From Calcarisporiella thermophila CBS 279.70 (Eukaryota > Fungi > Calcarisporiellomycota): a stretch of DNA of 64,000 bases. The stretch covers positions 185,299 to 249,298 of the forward strand of contig NW_027192220.1 in assembly GCF_041956535.1 (NCBI RefSeq), written 5' to 3'. Each line of letters begins with the position of its first letter. Position 1 is the stretch's first letter. A program made the translations under genes and the position numbers. Of this stretch, positions 28,158-37,271 are shown in pieces. Under the pieces are notes generated by a model that saw only the letters and a program-made list of their open reading frames with translations, was not told the DNA's origin and ran no database searches.

Positions 28158-28703
28158 ATTTGATATGAACAAAATGATTAAATATTGCTAGTCCAAAAGA
28201 CGTTTAACTCCATTCCCTCTCTTAAAACATTCCCTATATAGGCCTATTAATCTAATAGAGCTGAATCTGGGTTGCCAATTACCCCGGCTTGCCTTGCAAA
28301 GTGCGGATCTCACTGCAGCCCTATTTGGAGCCATCGGCTTGAGATAGAATCGGCCTGAAAATTACACTTATACATATGCACGTGTCATGCTCATTGCACA
28401 CCAACGTTACAGACGAGGGACACGTAAAAGTACAGTTAACATTACCGTGAACCACCCATTCAAATCAAAGTGTATTAAGACCTGATCATGTTGTTTTTTT
28501 CTGGGTTTCCGGCATTAAATATGGTTATTTAAATAAGGTGGGTTCATTTTCAACGAAACAATAATAGATACAATGGATGTAGATAGAGAACAGAAGGCAC
28601 ATGAAACAATGCAAATATGACAACTGTTGTGTTTAGTAGCGAAACGCTGGTTAATGGCCTCCCCAGTATACAGTGGATGATTATGCGGAGCTTGATGAGA
28701 TGT

Positions 28704-29853
28704 TTATTTTATTTCCAATGCAATTTTCCCCCGGACTCCTTTCTCCAATGCTTCATGCGCCTTTGCCCCATCCGCTAGCACATACGTCTGCGTCACCACT
28801 CCTTTGAACTTGTCGCCCGCCTCCTCAATAAACTGGAGCATCTCCTCATAATCTTTTAGCGGGAGCCCTACGATAAACTTGTACCCACCACTGAATAGGT
28901 AGTGGTAACCAACCTTGAATGCCATCTTGGCTCCGTTCCAGAGACCAACGCGTTCAGCTCCAATGTGACTGAGAGGCCCTACGGCCGTGACATAGCGTCC
29001 CCCTTGCTTGATCAAGGGTCTGGCTCGATGAAAGTAGTCGTCGCCTCCAACCAGATCAAAGACGACATCGAACTGCTCTTCGGTAGCAAGCTCTTTCTCA
29101 AATGCTTGCTGGGTGTAGTCTATGACACGGTCTGCGCCCATTTCCCTGGTATATTCTGCATTTTTCCCCGAGCATACTCCTACTACATAGGCACCCGCCA
29201 ATTTCGCAAATTGTATAGCAAATACGCCGGTGCCTCCTGATGCTCCCAAAACCAGGACGCGCTTAGAGCCGGGCGGTGAGTTAGAACGGGGGAGGAGGCC
29301 GAGGTTGAAGAGACCGTAGAATGATGTAAGGCCGGCAATGCCAGCAGCTGCAGCGATGTCAGAAGGGATGCCCGGGGGACGCTTGGCCACATGGTCATTA
29401 TTAGGAGTGACGATAACATATCTGTTAAAGGGACATAGTTCATTCAGTCCTTCCAACTACCTTTTATTTCGCAATTGCATGCTTGCAGCAGCAAAAGAAG
29501 GAAAAAAAATAAAATAAAATAACAAACACTTACTCAGCGTAGCTGCCCGCTCCTGCTCCCGGAAAAAGAAGTCCACAAACCTGGTCCCCGATTCTATATC
29601 CCTCGACGTCCTTGCCTACCTCCGCTACCTCCCCGGCGAAATCCCCGCCTATGTTGGCGGGAAGTTTAAGTGGGAAGGGAAGATTGCCGCGACGAATTTT
29701 CCATTCCACAGGGTTAATGGAAGAATGACGGACACGCACTAGGATTTGATTGTGCGCAGGTTGTGGGATCGGGACAGTGGCCAGCTGGAGTACGGATGGA
29801 TCGCCGTAGGCAGTCAGCTGAAGTGCTTGCATCAGGGCTGGGTCGGTTGACAT
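28704..29853 (-). CDS. Zinc-independent MDR-family NADPH:quinone oxidoreductase (RTN4IP1/Yim1/Ast1-like), copy 2
   Basis: SSINPVEWK, GGDFAGEV, VLVLGASGGTGVFAIQFAK, GADRVIDY and RGKI; one intron. Confidence 0.9.
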
Positions 29854-30324
29854 TTTGAGAGTTTTGGAGAGTCATATGAAATGCTTGGCTCTAATCCTTT
29901 TTCCTTCCACAAAACGTGCCTTATATACGCTTATTACTCGTCATATTAGAATTGCAATCCGCACAGCCTCCGAATAATGAGCTCTATTTCCCATGTAGAG
30001 TCAATTGGATTGATTCGAGTTTGTTACCCGCATGAACGACACCAGATTGCGACCTTCCTAGTCGAACTGATACCCAAAAATAGGCTTTCTCAATAACTCA
30101 GCCCAAATATTCCAAGCCAAAATTCTTGACTACCAGGGCAGCATAGGAAAGGAATTAAACTAGGCTACATGCATTAACAAAAGAGGTGGGCACAGCAGTT
30201 GGAATAGGTAAGAGTAACAAGTACATGAAATTACGCAAATATTACATTGCTATACTAGCCATCGAATCGTGGGTTAATGGGACTGATTGGTGCGCAGATT
30301 ACTAAGTGCTGCTAGAAAAGAGGT

Positions 30325-31436
30325 TTATTTTATTTCCAGTGCTATTTTCCCCCGGACGCCTTTCTCCAATGCTTCATGTGCTTTCGCCCCATCCGCTAGC
30401 GCATACGTCTGCGTCACCACTTTTTTGAATTTGTCGCCCGCTTCCTCAATAAACTGGATCATTTCTTTATAATCTTTAGCTGGAAGCAAAAGAATTATTT
30501 TATATCCGCTATTGAAAAGAAAATGATAGCCGGTCTTGAACGCCACCATGGCACCGTTCCAGAGACCAACGCGTTCAGCTCCAATGTGGCTGAGGGGCCC
30601 TACTGCCGTGACATAGCGGCCCCCTTGCTTGATCAAAGGTTTGGCTCGATAATAATAGTCATTGCCTCCGACCAGATCTAGGACCACATCAAACTGCTCT
30701 TCGGCAGCAAGCTCTATCTCGAATGCTTGCTGGGTGTAGTCAATGACACGGTCCGCGCCCAATTCACGTGCGTATCCTGCATTTTTCCCCGAGCATACCC
30801 CTACAACATAGGCACCCGCCAGTTTCGCAAATTGCAGGGCAAATACACCAACGCCTCCCGACGCACCTAAGACAAGCACACGCTTGGAACCCGACGGTGT
30901 AATAGAGCGGGGGAGGAGGCCGAGGTTGAAGAGACCGTAGAAAGCCGTAAGGCCGGCAATGCCAGCGGCGGCAGCGTCGGCAGAAGGAAGGTTAGGGGGA
31001 CGCTTGGCGACGCGATCCTTACTCGGATTGACAGTAATGTACCTGTCGAAGAGATTAAAGATATTCAATTCGTTGCATGTTCTCCTTTGTATAATTTTTT
31101 TAGGCGGAAAACCTACTCCGCGTATGTCCCTGTTACGAATCCCGGAAACACCATCCCACACACTTCATCGCCAACTTGATACCCTTCAACTTCTTTGCCT
31201 ACTTCCGCTACTTCCCCCGCGAAATCACCGCCGATAATGGCGGGGAGTCTAAGAGGAATGGGAAGATTACCGCGACGCATCTTCCATTCCACCGGGTTGA
31301 TAGAGGAATGACGAATACGGACCAGAATTTGATCGGGTGCAGGTTGTGGAATCGGGACCGTAGCCAACTGAAGTACCGAAGGATCGCCATAGGCCGTCAG
31401 CTGAAGTGCTTGCATCTGGGTTGGCTCTTTCGACAT
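30325..31436 (-). CDS. Zinc-independent MDR-family NADPH:quinone oxidoreductase, copy 3
   Basis: Same motifs and same intron position as copy 2 (after YAE), with an intact frame. Confidence 0.9.
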
Positions 31437-32225
31437 GTTTGAGGTCTTGGAAAAATAGATCGAGGGGATTAAATTTTTTACGAAAAACGACTTTATAAAC
31501 CTATATAAAGGATTTAAACCATCGATTGGGATTTCGCGATTTCTATGTAGAGTTCTAGGTTGCATAAACCACGAGTAGGATTGCAATATCGATTGAAAAT
31601 TCTTCCAATTTTCAGCTGAAAAAGGATATCACCCCTATCACGCTCGACCTATGACGCAGACAATTAAGATTGTATTGCTTCACTTCTCAGTTCTTTTTTA
31701 TTTTTAAATGAGCTCCTTGGAACTATAAGGATAATTCCAAATAAAATCAGACCATTGATTTTAATAGCACAATGGAAATAAGCGCGTAAATTAATATTTT
31801 TAGCATGTAAATTATTGTTAACCCTGTCATTATTTATCCTAATCGCCAAACGTGTACTGTAATAAATGCTCTGTAGTTAATGGTTTGCATCTTAGAAAAC
31901 ATCATAGTGCATTTAACAACATTGTTATTTCTGAGAAGCTTATTTGATAATCTGGCGTACTATAAGCATATAAAGGGATAAACTATTGCATTAGAGATAT
32001 GGACTGTTGTTTTACAGAAAGCTAGGTTTAAATCGTGGTGTTCCGACTATAGCAAGGGTAACTCCAACAAGGGTTCGCAAATTTCTTCAGAAATAATGTA
32101 AATGTCACCAAAATAAAAAGGCACATTTTTGGTAAGTGGGAATCCTAAAACCACAGTTAGATAGTCCTTGTAACCACAACTTATTTCTTGACAATTGAGT
32201 CTCTATATTGTGCCAAGTTAAAATT

Positions 32226-32882
32226 ATGAAGATTTATGCTTCAATTCTGTTGCTATTGTTGGCTGCGAGTGGGAGTAGGGCGTATGACGAAGATGTGACT
32301 TCAGCCTTGGTCAAAGGATTCAAGGGGGACTACGCCGCGGCAAACCAAAATCTCGCAAAGCTTACACCAGTAAAAAGAGAGCGCTATCTAAAATTTCTTA
32401 AAGATACCGACGACAAGATTGGTTTCGACCCCCGCAAGCATGTTCCAAAAATGGATGTTCCAGCTGCCTATGCTCAAGCTAGTGCGGGCTTTAGGATGCT
32501 TCTTAACGGCAAGTCTGATAAAGCATTTAAACTTTTCAGCAAGGGGGTCGCCCATCTCAAGCCTAGGTACGACAAGTGGAAGGCGAGCTTAGTTAAGAGC
32601 AACGGCGGTCAACTGCCCTATCTGGGGCCTGAAATGGAGCGGATCCTTAACAAAAATTTGCCCGTTGGAAAATGTGCAGATGCACCTTGCGATGTGCAGC
32701 ATTTGATCCCATTTGACGACGCTCCCATTGGTCGTGAATTTTGGAATGCGCTCGTTGCTTTTGCAGATAAGATTGCAGCTATACCGCTTAATTTCCCTCC
32801 TGGCGCCAACGAAGATGAGTATCTACAAGATCCCAAATATAAACCCGAATACAAACTCCCGTACAATAAGGATTCTTCATAA
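32226..32882 (+). CDS. Secreted hypothetical protein, 218 aa, intronless
   Basis: Signal peptide MKIYASILLLLLAASGSRA, then a helical-looking Lys/Ala-rich body with one Cys pair (CADAPC). The ORF is GC-richer than its AT-rich flanks. Confidence 0.8.
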   Translation: MKIYASILLLLLAASGSRAYDEDVTSALVKGFKGDYAAANQNLAKLTPVKRERYLKFLKDTDDKIGFDPRKHVPKMDVPAAYAQASAGFRMLLNGKSDKAFKLFSKGVAHLKPRYDKWKASLVKSNGGQLPYLGPEMERILNKNLPVGKCADAPCDVQHLIPFDDAPIGREFWNALVAFADKIAAIPLNFPPGANEDEYLQDPKYKPEYKLPYNKDSS

Positions 32883-33270
32883 CTTAGGTTGTGAAGAATC
32901 CTTATTGTAACTAACTATTGGTTGTTACTTATCATTGTAATTCAGAACTACAACAGCTGCCCTTTAACAGTTGTTTGTTCACAATATTGTTCTCTATATG
33001 CAAAAAGATAATATGGTATCCATTGAAGATCCTTTGGCATTTCTTTTGTAAAAATATTGACATGCAAAGAGACCCAAAACTAGTAATAAAGCGTGTAAGA
33101 GAAGTGAAGGATGATTTATAACATGATAAAGGGAGAATAAAATATATACATTGTTTGATATATATATATAATATCGGTATCCAATTGAATGGAAATTTAC
33201 TCCGCATACGAGTTTTCGATAATGTATACTCTAACCTAAGTCCGAAAACATATGTAATTCGAAAAATCCC

Positions 33271-33886
33271 GTGAGGTGGATTGTTAGGGGGGCTATCTAT
33301 CTACGTGAATACGACTATGTCGTTTGGCATCGTAAAGGTTCTCTAAATCCTGCTGACGCTCTTTCCGGACTCCCTGTCAATATGATTGGCGAAGGCGAGG
33401 ACGGGTCCATAGAGGGTGACGGAGTGGATGGTGAAGCGGCGATAGAGAACGGCGACGGTCAGAGAAAGAGGATAAGATTAGCTATAGACCTTGCGAAATG
33501 GATCGCAATTTATAAATACTTGACTGTGTTTCGGTATCCGAATGATTGCAATGAAAGAATGTGGCGCAAAATACGAAGATGATCGGCAAGCTTCCGAGAG
33601 GAAAATGGGAAACTGATTCTACGCAAGTCTCGGGTGGAGTATCCAATTGTGGTGCTTCACACTGGTATCGCGGAGGCGACGGTTTGGAGGGTTCACGAAG
33701 AGAGCCATTGTGGTATCAACAACACCTGGCGCAAGTAGAAAGAACGGTTTACTGGACCGCGACTGTTCGAAGTGGCCAAAAGCGTTGTTCGTTCTTGTAT
33801 TCGCTGCCAGGAGCGGAGAAAGGTCCGAAGAACTGTGGCCGGTCGAGAGCGGTAGGGTGTTCGAAATAGCGGGCATGTCCAACTAG
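33271..33886 (+). mobile_element. Ty3/Gypsy LTR-retrotransposon pol remnant (end of RNase H, linker and integrase HHCC zinc finger)
   Basis: YLREYDYVVWHRKGSLNPADALS (RNase H C-terminus), and VHEESHCGINNTWRK*KERF..VAKSVVRSCIRCQ (integrase zinc finger with an in-frame stop). Confidence 0.88.
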
Positions 33887-35253
33887 ATTTCCTTTGCATA
33901 AAAGTTTTCAAGAGCGATTACTCTAAATGATGAAGTAAATTAGTAGTATATAAGAACAAATATGCTTTTTATAAACATGATGTAAGATGAACATATCCTA
34001 GTGAAACGCGGTTCGAATGGTAGACAAAGATCTCGATAAAAATAGAAAACCGGTCTTTATTAGTAATATAATAATCGTAATAATAAATGATATATTCTCA
34101 ACTTGATAAAAATAGAAGATCGGTGAGTAGTAATAAAATAGATTAAATGGGTATATATGAAAAATAATGAATTAATTAATATGGATATGGCTTTTCTGAA
34201 GGATAACTAATAAATGCAGCATTTATTAAACAATAAACAAATAATAAAAAGGCAGCAATAAACTATCCCTATTCATAAAAGTATGATGAGTGAAATTAAC
34301 CGCCACATTACGAAACTTACTGCAGGTGAACCTGTTACACCTCGGCTCAAAAATTGAGCCCACGAAGGTATATTTTAGACTATTGATTTTTTCTTGCATT
34401 AGCTGAGGTGTCTATTCGATATCTGAGGCATGCGGATGGATTCCTTCGAGTTATAAATCATTTTACTATGAGTTTCTCGGACATTTTCTACCCCTCTTCG
34501 ATCTATTAACTGAATATAAAATTAGTATATAAGTTTTAATAGAAGTTAGTGTGTTGTATTTTTTAAAGTTGTTATAATAAATGTGATTCTAACGCAGTTA
34601 ATTTAAATTGTTGCTGCAATGCAGATAGCATCATCAGATGAATCGGTATATGCAGATGCTAATGAAGCCTTCTGCTCAATTATTTATCGGCGGTTGGATA
34701 GAGGCTCACACTTGTGGAATCCTCGCTGCATCATTGATTAAAGAGTATATTAGAATCGGATGAGAAAAGCTTTTTGCGGAACCTTCATGATTGGGATTTT
34801 AGCGAATTAAGAGTTAAGGATAGACTGGATAAGGAGTAGGGCAAAAAGCAAACAGAGCAGATAGCTAAAATGGATAGAGTGCATATGTTCATTTATATTA
34901 AAGAATGGTGTATGTTATTATGAGATTTGCAACCTAATCTTATCTTGTAGAAGCTACCTCCATCAATATCTGATATATACTCTTTCCTGTAAATGTACTT
35001 ACACAAAGTTACAATATTAATTTAAAAGTCTCACTTAATCAAATAAGATATTTTTGAATATGAAAGGAAATGAACATACATAGAGCAAATAAAGCTAAAT
35101 GACCATACAATGTATCACACGAGCAAGTAATGGGAATTTCAATTGAGATAATATGAAAAGAAGGGGATTCTTTAATTATTATTACTATATATATATTTAT
35201 TATAGTACCCTTTCCCGTAATTTGTGATTAATGATTCAAAAATCAGCAAAAAG

Positions 35254-35493
35254 TTATTCATTTACACACACATTGCCATGAGCCGGATTTAGCAATCCAA
35301 CAACGTTAATAGTATTACCACATGCATTGACCGGCACTTCGACTGGGACCTGGATAGCATTTCCATTCACGACTCCAGGGTTATTTACCGCTGCCCCATC
35401 CACACCATCAGGACTTATCTCTAACGGAGCTCCTTTCGATTGTGCAGCGAAAAATAAAAGAAAGAAACCAACATATACTGAAGTATATTTCAT
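35254..35493 (-). CDS. Secreted short chaplin (DUF320 / ChpD-H-like), 79 aa
   Basis: Signal peptide plus GAAVNNPGVVNGNAIQVPVEVPVNACGNTINVVGLLNPAHGNVCVNE, the chaplin domain with both conserved Cys. Intronless, with a TATA-like TATATAAG about 190 bp upstream. Confidence 0.93.
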   Translation of the reverse strand: MKYTSVYVGFFLLFFAAQSKGAPLEISPDGVDGAAVNNPGVVNGNAIQVPVEVPVNACGNTINVVGLLNPAHGNVCVNE

Positions 35494-36471
35494 ATCGGCA
35501 AAGGGTATATAGACTTTGGAGGGGAAAAAGGGATCGAATAACTTATACCTTTCGAAAGGTTGGAAAGAAAAACAATAATTGTAATCTATGGATAAATCGA
35601 AATAGTTGTGAGTACTGGCGTTATACTAACAGTTGAAAAGAACTGGTTGAAAAAAAATAGGTTGAGAATAGTATGGGCTCCTTATATATGATATGCGTAC
35701 TAGCCGTTAAGTGTTCGGTGTGTTTTCACTGTAACCGAATCTATTACCCCGGCGAAGGAGGCTTGCAGAACGCACCACATGAAGCATTTATAATTCCATT
35801 TAAAGAGTTATGGAAAAGTCGAATATTGTAGTGGAGCGAATAGCTAGTAGAGCAAGCACCATTTAACTTATTTTTCAAAATTATGCATCTTATCACGAAA
35901 CCTACATACTATATCATCATGCAGGAGTTGTCCCCATTGATATCTGATTTGTCTGCCTACCTGCAATAGACCCTGTACGAAGAAATGTTTGTAAATTAGT
36001 GTACATAAGAATAAATAGGCTTTTTATGAATATGTAGCAAGATGAGTATAGATAGAGCAAGTGTTGCTAAGTGGTTGTCTAATGAATCGTGCAGTCCAAT
36101 ATTGACTTATTACTTTCTGTGGTTTTGGTGATATTCAGATAAGCTCAGAAGCTAAAACGCATCAGCCTCCTTTTCGCTCTGTTGAACAACTCCTTGTGAT
36201 GCTAACAAAAATATTAAATTTCGCTGGATAAGAACACGGTGATCCGCAAAAATGGAAAAACAATGGAGGCTGCATCTACATTGAATGATGTCCCTCATAA
36301 AGCCTTAGCCGAAACGAATTTGCCAACATTTCTCATTATATTAGTGAAGACAAAATTGAGCTTTTCATCTCTAGTAGGAAAACTAAGGATCGAATACTAA
36401 CCTAACCTAAATCTTCGCTCATTTTATTTTCCGTTGCAATCTTTTGGTCTCTATAGAGATTCACTATTGCG

Positions 36472-37271
36472 ATGTACGGTAATAAAGGCATGGGATCCAC
36501 CGCGCTCAAGCGGTTAATGACTGAATATAAAGGTACGAAATTTGATTTAAGCGATCTATCAAAATTTGTTTCTAATGCCTTCTTCCTCGTTAGAATTGAC
36601 CGTCAACGCACCTGAAGGGATCGTTGCCGGTAATTATACTTTTGACATGCTGCCGAAATAAGAGTTTTTCATTTTTTTTCCATTTTTTGTTCTTCTTTTT
36701 AACATGTTATTAGGTCCAGTTACAGAAGAAAATTTCTTCGAATGGGAGGCTCTCATTGCGTAATTGCTTTATTCATCACTTCCATTGGATATCTCTAATG
36801 CTTTTCTTTTATTCTAACCATTAGTGGGCCTGAAGGAACTCCTTACGAAGGAGGACTTTTCTCCGCAATCCTCACATTCCCCCGAGATTATCCTCTGAGC
36901 CCCCCCACTATGAAGTTCACCTGTCCCATGTTTCACCCTAACATTTACCCGGATGGCACGGTATGTATTTCAATTCTTCACCCACCCGGTGACGATCCCA
37001 ATATGTACGAAAGCAGTTCAGAGCGGTGGTCCCCAGTTCAGAGCGTGGAGAAAATTTTGCTGAGCGTGGTGAGTATGCTAGCGGAACCAAACGATGAAAG
37101 TGGTGCCAATATTGAGGCTTGCGTAAGTACTCTACCCTTCCAGAAAAGATGTACGTTGAATTTCCAGGTAATTTATCTCACTTGTGCGCAACATAGAAAA
37201 TATGGCGATCCGATAGAGAGGCCTTCAATAAAACGGTGCGAGACAGTGTACGACAGACTTTGGGACTGTAA
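36472..37271 (+). CDS. UBC7: Ubiquitin-conjugating enzyme Ubc7 / UBE2G2
   Basis: [73 protein letters not shown]; four introns. Confidence 0.96.

Follow-up and report, generated by a model that had tools for sequence, protein, structure and literature searches.

The locus lies in a 64-kb window (the whole stretch of Calcarisporiella thermophila DNA analysed, on the scaffold designated here C30) and comprises a small gene of the chaplin family with a promoter-like element, together with a duplicated block, repeats, a retrotransposon remnant and a ubiquitin-conjugating enzyme gene. The features were as follows, with coordinates referring to the window:

33247..33876 (+), remains of a decayed retrotransposon pol gene (RNase H/integrase part), with 78-81% identity to elements on scaffolds C2 and C24
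33935..33990 (+), left member of a pair of imperfect 56-bp direct repeats that enclose the LTR-like repeat and the chaplin block
34003..34308, dispersed LTR-like repeat of ~306 bp, which ties the block to fungal DNA
34388..36000, duplicated 1.6-kb block (3' flank, gene and promoter), 76% identical to scaffold C1
35254..35493 (-), short-chaplin coding sequence, copy C30, intronless, 79 amino acids (ORF translation and Pfam)
35260..35400 (-), chaplin domain PF03777, amino acids 32-78, with two Cys, three GN motifs and four conserved Pro
35401..35430 (-), variable linker, amino acids 22-31, where the indels between paralogues are located
35431..35493 (-), predicted signal peptide, amino acids 1-21 (hydropathy, paralogue alignment, genome pattern search and comparison with bacterial signals)
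35682..35704 (-), promoter-like element, a conserved GCTAGT motif followed by a TATA box, common to the chaplin loci
35991..36045 (+), right copy of the imperfect direct repeat, at the end of the homology with C1 and C10
36472..37271 (+), UBC7-type ubiquitin-conjugating enzyme gene, five exons, head-to-head with the chaplin gene

Translation of 35254-35493 on the minus strand gave the intact 79-residue product reported in the preliminary description, and the complete chaplin domain recognised there, including both Cys, was recovered when the proposed profile was run: PF03777 (ChpA-C, the former DUF320) matched residues 32-78 with 74.1 bits (E 7.9e-21; cut-off 21), which demonstrates membership of the family. 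Two Cys are conserved in short chaplins and absent only in ChpE; in the window protein the pair occupied invariant columns of the alignment. The further hallmarks of short chaplins, three GN motifs and four conserved Pro (PMC7766987, PMC3079736), were all present (3/3 and 4/4, respectively), and Asn replaced Ser at two positions that are Ser in 96-99% of bacterial sequences. A hydrophobic stretch at residues 6-17 was followed by small residues; the signal peptide, termed fungal-style before, and its cleavage site were predicted from hydropathy and the -3/-1 rule only, and the peptide differed from the Ala-rich signals of bacterial chaplins. The predicted mature peptide had 58 residues, 5713 Da, a pI of 4.05 and a GRAVY of 0.31. 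The resemblance to ChpH, put earlier at roughly 70% identity, held for the sequence (34 of 47 residues, 72%, by hand count against the ChpH sequence given in that description, and 69-84% in the best local alignments with proteins that NCBI names 'chaplin ChpH') but not for charge, the pI of the window copy being nearer to that of the acidic ChpD/F/G class. Third codon positions were A or T in 55 of the 79 codons (GC3 0.29) and a TATATAA box, conserved at the other loci, was located at 35682-35688, ~190 bp upstream of the gene, in agreement with the A/T-ending codons and the TATA-like element pointed out previously. The scan for bacterial promoters gave matches at chance level only. The AlphaFold2 model was of low confidence (pLDDT 54) and uninformative, the PDB search found no relative, and no NCBIfam model matched chaplins, bacterial ones included.

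Exactly three chaplin loci were detected in the genome assembly (28.16 Mb, 116 contigs), on scaffolds C30, C10 and C1, with PF03777 and a custom profile giving the same result; the C30 and C10 copies were intact and that of C1 was frameshifted. Features of the family outside the window were the following:

C10:350293-350535, intact chaplin paralogue of 80 amino acids (PF03777, 78.9 bits)
C10:350928-351324, chaplin promoter without a gene (orphan), immediately preceding the promoter of the C10 chaplin gene
C1:916483-916712 (-), frameshifted chaplin copy, with a 10-nt deletion between signal and domain

The C10 protein kept two of three GN motifs and four of four Pro, with a predicted pI of 6.71; GRAVY of the two intact proteins was 0.31 and 0.32, and the predicted mature masses were 5.7-6.0 kDa. 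In C1 the frameshifting deletion fell at the junction of linker and domain, within a run of short homopolymers of a 454 assembly, where a sequencing error is possible. The domain downstream of the deletion has, however, also lost conserved Pro, Asn and Leu residues; of the short-chaplin hallmarks, one GN motif and two Pro are gone altogether and another Pro falls at the frameshift. All three proteins began with the same signal peptide. The combined GCTAGT and TATA pattern, which was drawn from the chaplin sites themselves, occurred at four places in 28 Mb, every one of them upstream of chaplin genes: once on C30, once on C1 and twice in tandem on C10. The distal C10 promoter, the orphan, was 83% identical to 35613-35991 of the window, and the gene behind it was missing. 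The right direct repeat coincided with the end of the C1 and C10 homology, which suggests that the C30 copy inserted at this point. We infer that a tandem pair of chaplin genes once stood on C10, that one member was copied to C30 and C1, and that the original was afterwards deleted. Paralogues of a zinc-binding dehydrogenase/quinone reductase (window 28700-31590 (-) and C10:356193-357349 (-), 71-75% identical in DNA) were found within 4-6 kb of both intact chaplins, suggesting a larger shared duplication, and a near-perfect palindrome of 44 bp was located at C10:349956-349999, ~300 bp downstream of the C10 gene. Neither intact chaplin protein was present in a collection of 15 billion sequences that includes neighbouring genes of the species; the two genes are thus probably unannotated, which would explain why they have gone unnoticed.

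The UBC7 gene, whose exons were translated one at a time, started at 36472, 979 bp from the chaplin, and had GT-AG introns in accordance with the intron-rich UBC7 placed about 1 kb away at first inspection. On the opposite side, 950 bp from the chaplin, lay the LTR-like repeat, found at a dozen places in the genome; the pol elements on C2 and C24 were of the Ty3/gypsy type, as judged from their translations. GC3 was 0.29 and 0.23 for the C30 and C10 chaplins; among bacterial chaplin domains it was never below 0.47, and the median was 0.94. The fungal chaplins were also lower than housekeeping genes of the host (0.45-0.61) and than the hydrophobins on scaffold C18 (0.57-0.59), so that there was no sign of selection for high translation. 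This qualifies the codon argument of the preliminary description: the base composition of the window chaplin followed that of the local AT-rich island, which argues against Streptomyces DNA and gives no sign of high expression either. Contaminating bacterial DNA or a chimeric join might be feared in an assembly made from 454 data with SOAPdenovo (PMC11393059 supplement), but a GC3 below the bacterial minimum, the three copies, which have diverged and lie on separate scaffolds with AT-rich flanks in common, an LTR-like repeat specific to the genome on one side and a five-exon gene on the other, and a window free of N gaps leave such an origin with hardly any probability. In agreement with the preliminary description, which argued against high-GC contamination, the window chaplin is fungal DNA, physically integrated in the genome.

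Other genes were noted around the three copies. An intronless gene for a secreted protein of 218 amino acids (window 32226-32882 (+)), a singleton in its 90% cluster with no match in Pfam or NCBIfam, faces the chaplin in convergent orientation, with the retrotransposon remnant between the two. The C10 and C1 copies were set among BRCT-like, RhoGEF-like, NB-ARC-TPR and WD40 genes, and an intronless frame of 1268 codons for an NB-ARC-TPR (NLR-like) protein (C1:911476-915282 (+)) adjoined the broken chaplin. Amyloid signalling linked to this NLR-like gene was considered and rejected, because the chaplin peptide carries a predicted secretion signal and the intact copies had no NLR neighbour in the regions read.

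Named protein matches to the window chaplin came exclusively from Streptomyces, Kitasatospora or Streptantibioticus (47 candidates). A GTDB scan of 185,579 species yielded 70 actinomycete loci plus two weak strays, Atlas clusters containing a chaplin were 100% bacterial, the real matches among metagenome loci had 52-71% GC, and 9 of 301 sampled Actinomycetota genomes matched, with 8-15 domains each. No other eukaryotic chaplin appeared among 46 word-search matches, the best 150 of 1072 representative matches (judged bacterial from sequence features, a few by name), 15 metagenome loci and the Atlas clusters. Among the matches listed, every identifiable homologue was bacterial and every named one actinobacterial; as the protein searches covered 47 candidates and the best 150 of 1072, other early-diverging fungi may also carry chaplins.

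The window domain shared 37 of 43 residues (86%) with a chaplin of Streptomyces luteireticuli, and identities at the three codon positions were 0.91, 0.86 and 0.16, indicating that silent sites have been fully turned over while the protein was kept. Its nearest relatives constituted a subfamily present in S. luteireticuli, S. caatingaensis, Streptomyces sp. AV19 and uncultured soil bacteria (35-37 of 43 identities for S. luteireticuli and the soil contigs, 34 of 43 for AV19). In the tree, C30 and C1 grouped with this actinobacterial subfamily with support of 94/96, and they had in common with it the rare residues Glu45, His66, Val69 and Glu73 (alignment numbering), each seen in 5-10% of the sampled bacterial domains. 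The C-terminus with His and a terminal Glu was likewise that of this subfamily, whose members, unlike the fungal copies, carried bacterial signal peptides, had GC3 of 0.47-1.0 and stood beside a two-component system, OsmC and a cold-shock gene, a bacterial context. Short chaplins of uncultured soil bacteria, among the closest relatives of the fungal gene, showed unusually low GC3 (0.47-0.60) on contigs of 52-59% GC; the idea that these could be fungal contigs was discarded, as they are bacterial by context. A transfer from Actinomycetota to the fungus is well supported, and its direction follows from the age and diversity of the family in actinomycetes, as opposed to its detection in this single fungus. 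The donor would belong to Streptomycetaceae or a close uncultured relative, which is as far as 49 alignment columns can narrow it. The ameliorated bacterium-to-fungus transfer proposed at the outset therefore agrees with the bacterial-only homologues, with the nesting within Actinobacteria for which a phylogeny had been suggested, with GC3 and with the integration in fungal DNA.

Between C30 and C10, dS was 0.81 and dN 0.27, i.e., a dN/dS of 0.33 on a sample of 40 codons (bootstrap pN/pS 0.25-0.82); dS in the signal peptide was similar. The comparison of C30 with the frameshifted C1 gave instead a dN/dS of 1.08, and both pN and pS matched the divergence seen in the non-coding flanks; most of these changes fell on the C1 branch. 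Of the changes unique to one branch, 2 of 5 were non-synonymous for C30 versus ~12 of 13 for C1 (hand count). From a dN/dS of 0.33 as compared to 1.08 at the rate of the flank, it follows that the two intact genes are under purifying selection at the protein level and that the C1 copy behaves as a pseudogene. The changes in C1 may have been neutral or diversifying. These values also bear on whether a once-functional transfer is now decaying or barely expressed, with the family on its way to being lost. Such a fate would be in line with the frameshift and approximately neutral rate of C1, the C10 promoter left without its gene, the low GC3 in an AT-rich, retrotransposon-littered setting, the two Ser-to-Asn changes at near-invariant sites and the absence of both intact proteins from the collection, hence probably of a gene model. 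Annotation often misses small genes, however, and the two intact ORFs with a dN/dS of 0.33 at a dS of ~0.8, the different share of non-synonymous changes on the C30 and C1 branches, and the preservation of signal peptide, Cys pair and TATA element in both C30 and C10 speak against decay, which we consider unlikely, although it deserves to be kept in mind.

As regards kinship among the copies, DNA clearly united C30 and C1, which shared 24 of 26 synonymous codons (15 of 25 for C30 and C10; P = 0.05) and 1.6 kb of flank. An AU test on 49 protein columns rejected the monophyly of the three copies (P = 0.0002) and did not reject either pair tested (P = 0.17 and 0.11). The C1 domain displayed a rare Asp-Ala-Asn motif, present in 2% of 193 domains and, C1 apart, confined to the S. 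luteireticuli group, and a switch between Pro-Val and Asp-Ala recurred among the chaplins of Streptomyces of that group. Convergence, gene conversion among the copies, or the uptake of more than one chaplin gene are possible sources of this mixed signal.

Chaplins and hydrophobins are the textbook case of convergence for aerial growth, in filamentous bacteria and fungi, respectively. Three intact, intronless class I hydrophobins with 8 Cys each in the mature part were found in the same genome (PF01185: 80, 30 and 25 bits; cut-off 23), one on scaffold C25 and a tandem pair on C18 (~373.3-375.1 kb (-); 30 and 25 bits), the latter annotated in the species as uncharacterized proteins VTP21DRAFT_3664 and 3665. 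Class II hydrophobins (PF06766) were not found in the genome by a search run without a positive control, and a promoter common to chaplins and hydrophobins was sought and not found. The preliminary description had seen in the chaplin a replacement for hydrophobins lacking in the lineage, a notion in whose favour most early-diverging fungi surveyed are devoid of them, hydrophobins being rare but known outside Dikarya (PMC6784888; bioRxiv 10.1101/2022.08.19.504535). The hydrophobin profile suggested in that description nevertheless returned three intact class I ORFs, two of them annotated proteins of the species, so that replacement is contradicted at gene level and appears very improbable; the chaplin comes in addition to three separate hydrophobin genes. 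Class I hydrophobins (PF01185; SC3, RodA) are functional analogues of chaplins, being secreted, amphipathic proteins that form amyloid-like rodlet coats on aerial structures, and differ from them in their unrelated sequence and 8-Cys fold.

By sequence, the fungal genes are short chaplins; as a system, they are eukaryotic, lack long chaplins and rodlins, and stand beside hydrophobins. As in S. coelicolor ChpD-H, a signal peptide precedes a single hydrophobic domain of ~47 residues with two Cys, three GN motifs and four Pro (in the window copy), the mature mass is 5.7-6.0 kDa, and the GRAVY of ~0.3 compares with 0.16-0.60 for the bacterial proteins (PMC3079736). An acidic member (C30, pI 4.05) and a near-neutral one (C10, pI 6.71) mirror the acidic ChpD/F/G (pI 3.8-4.5) and the near-neutral ChpE/H (pI 6.8-6.9; PMC3079736). 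Unlike ChpD-H, the fungal genes are encoded by a eukaryote, with another signal peptide, a TATA promoter and AT-rich codons, and number two intact copies in contrast with about eight genes in S. coelicolor. A long chaplin, with two domains and a sortase signal, was not found by PF03777 and the custom profile across the whole genome, which contained three single-domain loci only, and the search for rodlins RdlA/B (NF041022) gave none in the fungus vs. four in each of two Streptomyces positive controls.

In S. coelicolor, the monomer of each short chaplin is surface-active, every one of these peptides can by itself form cross-beta fibrils in vitro, and a chaplin mutant can be made to grow aerially again by supplying them (PMC3079736). 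Because the fungal peptides keep the features tied to this behaviour and mirror the two charge classes, we favour, with a probability of about 0.6 and by analogy, a secreted surfactant or amyloid peptide that would supplement the hydrophobin coat at the air interface. An ancestor of C. thermophila, a member of the Mucoromycota whose saprobic lineage is the sister group of Mucoromycotina and was for a long time placed among ascomycetes (PMC6899921), took up a short-chaplin gene from a soil actinomycete, and the domain came to be driven by a fungal TATA promoter and preceded by a new signal peptide. The GC-rich codon bias was lost and the gene duplicated, leaving two intact paralogues, one frameshifted copy and one orphan promoter. 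The mature peptide of ~58 residues would be secreted through the ER with formation of the disulfide, and its monomer would lower surface tension and, where hyphae or spores meet the air, assemble into cross-beta fibrils, in the way of single S. coelicolor short chaplins in vitro. It would thus supplement the three class I hydrophobins and work without a long-chaplin/sortase anchor and rodlins. Against such a role count the broken copy among the three and the promoter without a gene, the GC3 below that of host genes, the two Ser-to-Asn changes, and the lack of long chaplins and rodlins, since robust aerial growth of Streptomyces needs long and short chaplins together (PMC3079736); the hydrophobins may, moreover, already be doing the work of the coat.

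Chaplins are also the material of attachment fimbriae and are known from actinobacteria that do not grow aerially (PMC4255298, PMC7766987), so that the fungal peptide could serve adhesion or contact with actinomycetes, sticking to surfaces or joining or disturbing the chaplin sheaths of neighbours, rather than an aerial coat of its own. The availability of hydrophobins for that coat and the closeness of the domain to bacterial sequences, which cross-seeding would favour, are consistent with this role; the constraints of self-assembly account for the conservation equally well, however, and we judge it improbable. Starting again from the surfactant or amyloid role, a bolder and rather doubtful extension would make this the only eukaryotic chaplin system, in which the acidic and the neutral peptide, together with the class I hydrophobins, build one mixed amyloid coat of bacterial and fungal components and hydrophobins or wall glucans provide the anchoring in place of long chaplins and rodlins.

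The fungal chaplin is real, integrated and selected, and apparently undescribed. Our literature search found no paper on fungal chaplins, on DUF320 in fungi or on chaplins in early-diverging fungi, and the term chaplin was absent from a survey of horizontal transfer in 44 early-diverging fungi and its supplements, a survey that does not name the genus Calcarisporiella. A fungus natively carrying both chaplins and hydrophobins, the former under purifying selection, shows that a bacterial solution to aerial growth can cross kingdoms. It opens to experiment the questions of whether short chaplins can function in the absence of long chaplins, sortase and rodlins, whether the two kinds of coat protein assemble together or have separate tasks, and by what means dry surfaces that repel water arise in fungi other than Dikarya. 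The scope is so far one species, which has many other candidate transfers, and the function is deduced from known chaplins. The SC3-type class I hydrophobin on scaffold C25 (C25:89065-89367 (+), intronless, 80 bits, GC3 0.36) is a candidate transfer from fungus to fungus: its exact sequence was absent from the protein collection, and its best matches all belonged to Agaricomycetes, with 52-64% identity (top seven named). A small ORF for a secreted SH3-like protein was located 4.5 kb from this hydrophobin, at C25:84593-84895 (+).
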